Source: Anthoceros angustus (taxonomy: Eukaryota > Plantae > Anthocerotophyta). Taken from it: a DNA stretch of 64,000 bases. The position numbers and the translations under genes were made by a program. Location: NCBI GenBank assembly GCA_010909165.1, contig MU008158.1, forward strand, positions 494,581-558,580, written 5' to 3'. Shown here piece by piece: positions 44,743-47,767 of the stretch. The notes below the pieces were generated by a model, which was not told where the DNA came from, ran no database searches, and saw only the letters and a program-made list of their open reading frames with translations. Each line of letters begins with the position of its first letter. The stretch's first letter is position 1.

Positions 44743-47700
44743 ATGTCTATGGCAAGTGGTGATTGCACCCTTGCAGGGGCTTTAGGGAGCACGGAGGATG
44801 ATCTTATGCTTTTGACAGATGGGAAGGTAGCATGGGTGCCAGAAACTTCTTCGCTTAAGGTGAAGAATGAGGATCGGGACAAGAAGGAGAGGGAAAGAGA
44901 TGGTTGGAGCCCGAGTGCAACTTCATCCCTTCTTGATGCTTTTGGGGAGAAGTATGCAAAGGTACAAGGTGGTCATCTCCGGATAAAAGATTGGGAGGAG
45001 CTTACTAGTGCTGTCAATGCCCGTTGCAACGGAGAGCGATCTCCCAAAAGTGTAGATCAGTGTAAGAATAAGGTTGACTCCCTGAAGAAACGCTACAAGT
45101 TGGAAAGATCACGAAACAAAAGATCGGCATCCGGCAAGATCATCAGTGTCTGGCCTTGGTTTGAGAGGCTGGATGGTCTGATTGGTCATGTAGCACAAGG
45201 AAGCATGCTTGGACAGCAAGCTGCCAGTAGTGGCAGTGGTGCAGGCAGCAGGTTGAAGACTGCAGCGAGGTCCTCGCCAGACAGGGACAGGAAAAGAAGA
45301 AGGCATGAGACAGATCCCAAGCAAATTTCAAAGGCTCAGCTAAAAAAGGAGGTCAACTTAGTCAAGCAAGTGCCAGAGCAAGCCCACCTGAGACGAGCAA
45401 GTACAAAAACCTTCCTGTTTTCATTTAAGACGAGTGACAAGGAAGTCACCATGTATCTTTGAAGGTGGGTTACACACGTCATATTTCTCAGTTTCTGATT
45501 ATTGTGTTTTACAGGGACTTGACCAAGATGTCAGTGAATCAGAGGAGGAGCAAGATGATCGAGTAATGTGGGAGCTTTCAGCATTGACACCTCTTGATGG
45601 GCGCTATGCCAGCAAAGTGAAGAAGCTGAGGAAGATCTTCTGCGAGCATGGGCTTATATGCTACCGTGTATTTGTCGAGGTTCTATGTTATCCTGTTCTG
45701 TTCTGTTCTGAGTTGTCATGTTCTGTGGTTTTCCTTCCAATCTGTTGAATGGATGTCTCTCCCTCTGATGGACATCTCGTTGAGTGACAAGTATTTGGCT
45801 GTCATGGATTTTTGACAGTACAGTTGCTTATTTAGTTGCCAATTGCAGGTCCGGTGGCTCCAGATGCTTTCACAACTTCCTGAAATCAAGGAAGTGCCAG
45901 CATTCAGCTCAGAGGCGAGGTTGATTCTGGAAGAGACAATCTCTAGTTTCAGCGTTGAGAGTGCTCTTGCAGTGAAGAAGGTGGAGCGGATGATGAATCA
46001 TGATGTTAAGGCTGTGGAATATGTATTGAAAGAAAAATTCAAGGCCAATCCTGAGTTGTCGAAGGTAAGATATCTTAGCTGGCAATTCCACATTTCCTCA
46101 TTGTAGGCTCTTGTCCGTTGCTTAACCGTCTCTCCTCCTCCTTTTCTCAGGTGGTAGAGTTTGTACACTTTGCATGCACATCAGAGGACATCAATAACCT
46201 GGCACATGCATTGATGCTCAGAAATGCACTCCACACTATCATGCTTCCTGCTATGGACAGGGTCATTGCGGCAATACGGTCACTTGCACATGAATATGCA
46301 GGGATCCCAATGATTTCACGTTTGCATGGCCAGGTAAATCTCCTCTAGAGAAAACATTTCCAATGGCTGTACCTCAATATGAAGGAACGCGGTCCGATGC
46401 TTGTTTTGATATTATTGCAGATGTCGTCCCCAACAACTTTAGGGAAAGAGATGGCCAATTTCTGCTTCAGGTTACATGAGCAGCGTGAGGAAGTTGCCAA
46501 GGTGAAGATCAAAGGAAAAATGGCTGGAGCGGTTGGAAACTTCAACGCCCATGTTGTTGCTTATCCTGAAATCAACTGGGAGATAGTTGCTGAGGAGTTT
46601 GTTACGTCACTGGGCATCAGCTTCAATCCCTACACAACGCAGGTTGTCTGCTCACCCGCAACTATGTTAAGTCTTTCAAAGGCTCCAGCTTCTTCAGAGC
46701 GTACCATCTGAATGCTCTTCTGTTATCAGCAGCTGCTGTTGAAAATTAAAGATGCCTTCTCCGTGCAGATTGAACCACATGACTATATTTCACAGCTGTT
46801 CGACGACATATCACGCTTCAATACCATTTTGCTGAACTTCGACAGAGATGTTTGGGGATATGTATCTTTAGGTTACTTCCGACAGGTTGTCGTTGTCTAT
46901 TTCAGCATTGGCTGCCATGTCAGGTTCATCATCCCGCGATACTGACATCAGCTTTGACTTGGCAGCGACTGGTGCCTGGTGAGGTCGGAACCGCAGCCAT
47001 CTTGGCAAAGGCTAATCCTCTCGATTTTGAAAACAGCGAGGGTAACTTGGGGATGGCTAATGCGAACTTCCTGCATATGAGCTCGAAACTACCTGTTTCG
47101 CGCTGGCAGGTCTTGATTGATTTTTTGGACTTGACAGGGAGTGTGTAGTGAGCTGAGCGCCTTCAATGTCATTTCATTTCTGTCATTTGCAGCAACTTAC
47201 GAACAGAATTTGTGGGTGGGTTGTCCTTTCAGCGAGACTTGTCCGAATCCACAGTCCTCCGGTACATGGGTGTGGGTCTTGCTCAGTCATTGATTGCATA
47301 TGGAAGTACACTCAGAGGAGTGAGCAAACTGCAGGTCCTCCCCTTCACCTCCACCGCGAGTGTTAATTTTCCGTCTTGACGCTCTTTGTTCAGCCCTCTT
47401 AGCAAAGGTGATCCTTGCAGGTGGATGAATCGCGGATTCACGATGACTTGGCAACGTCATGGGAAGTTCTGGCAGAGCCGATTCAAATAGTAAGTTGTTA
47501 AGCTGTCTGCCGCCTATTCAGGCATGAAGGGGGACAGCATACAGACTAAGTTTAGGTGTGGCAAATATGTAGATGATGCAGAAGTATGGGATCGAAAGGC
47601 CGTGCGAAAAGCTGATGGAGCTCACGCGTGGTCAGGCAATCACGAAGGACAACATGCACCATCTGGTGCAGTCATTGAATCTGCCGCCTGAAGCCAAGGA

Positions 47701-47767
47701 GCGGCTTCTTCTTCTCACACCTATGACCTACCTTGGCCACGCTGAGTCTCTGGCTCGGCGAGTGTGA
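44743..47767 (+). CDS. Trihelix (Myb/SANT-like, ASIL/SIP1-type) DNA-binding domain fused to an adenylosuccinate lyase (PurB)-like domain with altered catalytic loop. Exons: 44743-45351, 45515-45679, 45849-46064, 46151-46333, 46421-46642, 46769-46885, 46966-47109, 47233-47334, 47421-47489, 47573-47767
   Basis: [54 protein letters not shown]; basic DRKRRRH; phase-0 GT-AG intron 45352-45514; then [64 protein letters not shown]. Confidence 0.8.

Follow-up and report, generated by a model that had tools for sequence, protein, structure and literature searches.

A trihelix DNA-binding domain joined in frame to a likely adenylosuccinate lyase pseudoenzyme in Anthoceros angustus

The locus described here raises the question of whether a plant transcription-factor domain and a purine-pathway enzyme have been joined into 1 protein and, if so, what the enzyme half now does. 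We analyzed a 64-kb stretch of Anthoceros angustus DNA (hereafter the window), for which an in-frame fusion of a trihelix domain to an adenylosuccinate lyase (ADSL) fold had been proposed from the letters alone. Spliced contigs from 4 of 4 runs, bearing 4 organism labels, joined position 45396 in frame to 45515; these runs were taken as RNA, with the contigs of all 4 lacking every intron at its exact boundaries. The fusion intron is 45397-45514 (+), 118 nt long, GC-AG, and phase 0, and replaces the GT-AG intron at 45352-45514 of the original prediction; the expected in-frame junction was found, but at 45396/45515 instead of 45351/45515, exon 1 being 15 codons longer and the predicted product 688 aa rather than 673 aa. 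The GT donor at 45352 was used by no contig among the junctions listed for the 4 runs, contigs being apt to drop rare forms. A stronger-looking GT at 45465 was ruled out as a donor, as it lies downstream of the stop at 45460-45462 that the exon-1 frame reaches if unspliced, and no junction among the contigs spliced an upstream transit-peptide exon directly to the lyase.

Both halves are covered by single contigs, with record 7 of run X8 reaching from 43546 to beyond 47106. The predicted product consists of the trihelix domain, a linker, and a full ADSL fold, and its coding frame runs over 10 exons without stops. As had been proposed, 9 further clean exons follow the first and carry the PurB-like domain, with Lyase_1 and ASL_C Pfam matches spread over them and internal introns that are all GT-AG and phase 0. 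Homology searches of the protein were run exon by exon, and the spliced model was joined for local comparison only. The gene model is as follows:

43544-43791 (+): first exon, non-coding, with the transcript start near 43544 (contigs of 4 runs start at 43544-43572 and splice to 44138)
43792-44137 (+): 5' UTR intron, GT-AG, 346 nt (junction in 4 of 4 runs)
44138-44742 (+): remainder of the 853-nt 5' UTR (contigs)
44743-45396 (+): coding exon 1, 218 codons, with acidic N-terminus, trihelix domain, and basic linker (contigs, Pfam)
45515-45679 (+): coding exon 2, with acidic linker, start of the lyase fold, and Met236 at 45566 (contigs)
45849-46064 (+): coding exon 3, lyase domain 1, NHDVKA motif (contigs)
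46151-46333 (+): coding exon 4, TSEDINN, catalytic His kept at 46325-46327, neighboring Thr170 replaced by Leu (Pfam)
46421-46642 (+): coding exon 5 (contigs, Pfam)
46769-46885 (+): coding exon 6 (contigs, Pfam)
46966-47109 (+): coding exon 7, degenerate signature loop at 46990-47016, TAAILAKAN for SSTMPHKVN (alignment)
47233-47334 (+): coding exon 8, equivalents of Arg335, Ser340, and Arg344 kept (Pfam, alignment)
47421-47489 (+): coding exon 9 (contigs, Pfam)
47573-47767 (+): coding exon 10 and stop, ASL_C, with Tyr402Cys and Lys406Met common to the relative (contigs, Pfam, alignment)
47768-47925 (+): 3' UTR to the contig limit (contigs)

Two features of the contigs are recorded separately. 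The 5' contig of run X1 (43544-44894) has a depth of 194 versus approximately 80 elsewhere, with a break at 44893, a step that may reflect coverage bias or a shorter 5' transcript. Run X9 contains, besides a near-identical sequence, a second fusion-type sequence of approximately 85% identity (44865-45164 and 46885-47477) in unjoined pieces, either from a mixed sample or from a paralogue.

Conservation of the fusion was assessed in a distant relative. An exhaustive search with exon 1 retrieved 1 close match, P0001 (71% identity), encoded on genomic contig L002 of run SRR33208241. This gene has the same 10 exons, a phase-0 GC donor, and 684 aa without stops, and it and the window gene are the 2 full orthologues compared. 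Between them, the trihelix is 95% identical (dN/dS 0.023), the lyase 82% (dN/dS 0.05), and the linker 51%, with the helical-bundle domain the best-kept part of the lyase (84%); as dS is approximately 1.7 and near saturation, the dN/dS values are rough but clearly purifying. The apparent start Met of the lyase is Leu in L002, and the lyase is therefore no independent gene there. No fused protein beyond that of this relative turned up in the searches made, a JGI metagenome scan gave no match, and another search returned chiefly UMP-kinase chimeras; such blanks do not establish absence. We regard the gene as old and confined to 1 lineage, probably the hornworts. The single fused gene of the original prediction thus held up, the locus yielding neither 2 genes without a junction nor a fusion absent from relatives.

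Within exon 1, 2 features concern DNA binding and nuclear entry:

44899-45186 (+): SIP1-type trihelix DNA-binding domain, aa 53-148 (Pfam PF13837; AlphaFold helices)
45286-45306 (+): basic NLS-like patch DRKRRRH, DRKRK in the relative (sequence only)

A complete trihelix domain had been claimed for this exon, and Pfam bore this out, with PF13837 (Myb_DNA-bind_4) matching aa 53-144 at an E-value of 1e-14 and 55 bits versus a cut-off of 27. The AlphaFold model has 3 helices and a fourth WPWF helix, and the Trp columns are invariant in the alignment. Comparison of the domain with the PDB by sequence gave no match, and Foldseek with the trihelix model returned weak matches only, including GT-1 2EBI at an E-value of 3.8. 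The basic patch and the acidic linker described earlier are both present, within a product whose linker between trihelix and lyase measures approximately 85 aa. A crude heptad scan of aa 1-235 found no coiled coil, in agreement with the earlier remark that no C-terminal coiled coil was obvious, and the C-terminus is occupied by the lyase fold. Among the sequences that match the trihelix domain best are trihelix/UMP-kinase chimeras, at approximately 50% identity. In the tree, the trihelix stands on a separate branch and falls outside the UMP-kinase-chimera clade (97/92), and a sister position to these chimeras was neither supported nor rejected (p-AU 0.125, in an alignment of only 98 columns); a domain swap out of a UMP-kinase chimera was not supported.

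The lyase half has the complete 3-domain fold, aligns to E. coli PurB over 453 positions with 56% identity, and is 59-69% identical to plant copies. In E. coli PurB, His171 has been assigned as the catalytic acid and Ser295 as the likely base, the latter on a mobile loop closing over the ligand (PMC2917274; PMC13539675), with an alternative catalytic assignment mentioned in 1 of these 2 papers, and ADSL active sites are built from 3 subunits (PMC2917274; PMC13539675). Among 68 bacterial PurB sequences, every fixed position of the reference loop, SSTMPHKVN, is conserved to at least 97%, and 4 plant canonical ADSLs have the loop intact. This invariant loop with its catalytic serine reads TAAILAKAN in the window and Cys-Ala-Gly, a 3-residue gap, and then RAN in L002. 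Universal loop positions are changed at 8 of 13 in the window versus 12 of 119 elsewhere (p 6e-5) and at 10 of 13 in L002 versus 10 of 119 elsewhere (p 1e-7). All of Ser296, Thr297, Met298, Pro299, and His300 are replaced in the fusion lyase, L002 having also lost 3 loop residues, and the catalytic-base position holds Thr in the window versus Cys in L002. The catalytic acid His171 is kept in both orthologues, and the window retains His91, Thr122, Ser123, His171, Lys301, and Asn303. Five changes are common to both (Ser296Ala, Val302Ala, Tyr402Cys, Lys406Met, and Ser28Cys), so that part of the decay dates to their common ancestor. The fusion lyase is very likely a pseudoenzyme, and normal ADSL activity has in all probability been lost, judging from these replacements; a Thr hydroxyl at the base position together with His171, Lys301, and Asn303 leaves some residual activity of the window protein formally conceivable.

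The nucleotide pocket has fared differently in the 2 species. Nine AMP-binding residues are listed for ADSL (PMC13539675), and these are kept at 9 of 9 positions in the window and at 6 of 9 in L002, which carries Arg15His, Asn90Lys, and Ser340Ala at positions universal in the canonical enzymes examined. The L002 changes (3 of 9 versus a background of 10 of 119) are of marginal significance (p 0.048), and the loop region is the least conserved part between the orthologues, at 47% identity. The 3 changed residues weaken the case for a conserved role as an AMP sensor: an AMP-sensing pocket conserved across both species is not supported, and an altered ligand appears possible.

We searched for the source of the 2 halves. 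An exon-5 search identified a second ADSL gene, L083, in the same run as L002. L083 lacks a trihelix, its GSSTMPHKVNP loop is intact, and it is predicted to carry an 86-aa extension that is rich in Ser/Thr, poor in acidic residues, and transit-peptide-like; its identity to the fused lyase is 67-69%. This gene in the relative, together with a further ADSL-type transcript in run X1 from the window's organism that is diverged and differs at its 5' end, agrees with the expectation that a separate canonical ADSL exists. The fusion itself, as had been proposed, has no transit peptide, its N-terminus being acidic, with 10-12 acidic residues in the first 60 versus 1 in the predicted extension of L083. 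Eight lyase-internal introns are located at identical positions in the fusion, L083, and 3 other plant ADSL genes, and in the tree L083 is the sister of the fused lyases (99/98), within plants (100/100). From the shared introns and the tree, the lyase half is a native duplicate made in the lineage before the split of the orthologues, and a horizontal transfer or retrocopy origin is ruled out by the same evidence. The fusion acceptor yields a 55-codon exon, and in the other plant ADSL genes L084, L085, and L087 predicted phase-0 acceptors, which precede the exon of the mature enzyme, yield 54, 52, and 51 codons; because these acceptor positions match, the sequences suggest that the trihelix exon took over from a transit-peptide exon at an ancestral phase-0 intron. 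In L083 (4036-4416), the transit peptide and mature N-terminus apparently form 1 exon, without the phase-0 intron predicted elsewhere.

The leader of the transcript has features of its own, the spliced 5' UTR containing 23 upstream ATGs (uATGs):

44665-44714 (+): stable hairpin shortly before the start codon; its core, 44684-44714, is kept in the relative (z -3.9 and -4.6 versus shuffles)
44706-44785 (+): 3 uATGs at -37, -20, and -15, versus -40, -20, and -15 in the relative (sequence comparison)

The hairpin core is identical at 28 of 32 nt in L002, a second 5' arm (44665-44678) is found in the window only, and alternative pairing is possible. The uATGs open a short uORF, a 20-codon out-of-frame overlapping uORF, and a 3-codon in-frame uORF. 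The block of hairpin and uATGs occupies 44665-44742 in the window and 2028-2090 in L002, with 1 ATG inside the 3' arm of the hairpin. Rfam over the window matched a tRNA only and gave no match to the hairpin. Retention of hairpin and uATGs despite saturated synonymous sites makes them candidates for translational control or possibly for a palindromic binding site, and a leader of this kind, rich in uATGs and stably folded, suggests that little of the protein may be made. Near the transcript start, collinear matches link window 43415-43432 and 43560-43574 to L002 826-843 and 963-977 (17 of 18 and 14 of 15 nt, with weak E-values), possibly as conserved promoter elements.

The surrounding window has a GC content of approximately 50%, its introns measure 80-170 nt, and it contains large PLS-E PPR genes, all of which would suit a hornwort. 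The 2 PPR genes, with E motifs, at 18468-22187 (-) and 59931-63965 (-), encode probable organellar RNA-editing factors. A full-length SMC protein of 1203 aa is encoded at 30570-34181 (+) in 1 open frame without introns, which is unusual for a plant SMC gene, and it may be a retrocopy. A tandem pair of small proteins, probably secreted and with weak matches to Stress-antifung (Gnk2/DUF26), is encoded in an AT-rich stretch (49561-50055 and 50275-50718, both on the minus strand). Ordinary neighbors at 9737-10642, 16038-17108, 23024-25558, 27849-28835, and 48382-48454 comprise 2 PMEI-pectinesterase genes, an F-box/Kelch gene, a partial ubiquitin-activating enzyme, and tRNA-Arg(CCT).

The explanation that we favor, with a probability of roughly 0.55, is a chimeric transcription factor in which a dead ADSL tetramer serves as a scaffold displaying up to 4 trihelix domains. 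The lyase half arose when a native, intron-bearing ADSL gene was duplicated and the canonical copy kept, and the trihelix exon would have substituted for the transit-peptide exon at the phase-0 intron. The protein would enter the nucleus and bind DNA via its trihelix domain, and the dead lyase fold would form the homotetramer of its family, substituting for the C-terminal helical dimerization domain of SIP1-type factors, so that up to 4 trihelix domains would be presented for multivalent DNA binding. A residual nucleotide pocket may tune the tetramer, without being its most constrained feature. The original prediction had assigned the lyase fold both oligomerization and ligand sensing; the former is plausible in view of the well-kept helical bundle, whereas the latter is weakened by the AMP-site changes in L002. 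A sensor, which is compatible with a scaffold and does not exclude it, is put forward only tentatively: the dead pocket would bind AMP, AICAR/ZMP, SAICAR, or S-AMP without turnover, and ligand-induced shifts in the tetramer would alter DNA binding, so that transcription would follow purine or nitrogen status. Precedents are Bacillus PurR and yeast Bas1/Pho2, which respond to SAICAR/AICAR in the yeast case, and all 9 AMP-binding residues are kept in the window while the catalytic loop is lost; computed allosteric coupling among the 4 sites of ADSL (PMC13539675) points the same way. Against it stand the 3 altered residues of L002, marginal as their p-value is, and a ligand-closing loop that has degenerated differently in the 2 species. 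That the gene encodes a plant factor sensing purine nucleotides via a dead ADSL tetramer, as one of recurring trihelix-pseudoenzyme chimeras, is a doubtful proposition on this balance.

The remaining readings are less probable. A lyase that is still active or has changed its specificity, and is anchored to DNA or chromatin, for example for local production of fumarate or nucleotides, is unlikely: the full fold is under purifying selection, the catalytic His is present in both species, and the Thr or Cys found in place of the base might still be reactive, but Ser296-His300 are all replaced, 3 loop residues are deleted in L002, and Thr versus Cys at the base suggests no common new chemistry. The dead subunit could instead mix into canonical ADSL tetramers and damp or relocate the enzyme, as its identity to the canonical paralogue, its helical bundle, and the sharing of active sites among 3 subunits (PMC2917274; PMC13539675) would allow; we consider this quite unlikely, since only the canonical copy carries a transit-peptide-like extension, so that different compartments are expected, and the trihelix would be left unexplained as the most conserved part. 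An artefact of 2 adjacent genes or read-through transcription, which would account for the stop of the unspliced exon 1, the lyase ATG at 45566, and the higher X1 depth over the 5' part, is very improbable given the identical in-frame GC-AG junction in all 4 runs, the retention of donor, phase, and acidic linker in L002 at saturated dS, the replacement of the lyase ATG by Leu, and intron-encoded tails that are not conserved.

A chimeric factor built on a dead ADSL scaffold can be set beside several known systems. DNA-binding domains joined to pseudoenzymes occur in regulators such as Bacillus PurR (a wHTH with a dead PRTase fold), GabR/MocR, and ROK repressors, in which an enzyme fold is likewise reused for oligomerization or sensing; their DNA-binding domains and folds are unrelated to those of the fusion, and the likeness is one of analogy only. 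Within the superfamily of ADSL itself, delta-1 crystallin is an example of an inactive member. To our knowledge, direct readout of purine nucleotide levels has been shown for no plant transcription factor, and if sensing proved true, plants would have one-component metabolite-sensing regulators in the bacterial style. Even as a scaffold only, the fusion would represent a metabolic tetramer recruited as the multimerization module of a plant transcription factor, and it offers a clean, dated example of the birth of a chimera through enzyme duplication, probable exon replacement, loop loss, and long retention under selection.

The fusion had been thought undescribed, and no published description of a trihelix-ADSL pairing was found in the literature covered, subscription journals being outside its scope; the 1 text in which both words occur, on a chrysanthemum salt-stress transcriptome, has each of them once. 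The expansion of the SIP1 clade in Anthoceros angustus has been published, and the genome supplement contains no mention of adenylosuccinate (PMC7027989). Compared with plant and E. coli PurB, the fusion has the common fold (and, with the plant genes, the 8 introns), lacks the transit peptide, has gained the trihelix, and has lost the signature loop. The plant protein At5g63420, which we take to be an active plastid RNase J and not a dead metabolic enzyme, also combines a trihelix with an enzyme fold. It (EMB2746, lactamase) and At3g10030 (aa-kinase, the UMP-kinase-like type of chimera) are trihelix-enzyme chimeras on record, and the trihelix of At5g63420 is of the GT-1 group and C-terminal (PMC5526864). 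At3g10030, with orthologues found from lycophytes and ferns to angiosperms, joins a SIP1-type trihelix by way of a linker to the complete fold of an enzyme from nucleotide metabolism, as the fusion does; its family carries a C-terminal AA_kinase (PF00696), whereas the fusion carries an ADSL of the purine pathway and is found in 1 lineage only. By its sequence, the fusion is a trihelix factor whose C-terminal module is new, and it does not qualify as an active ADSL or as a member of the At3g10030 family.
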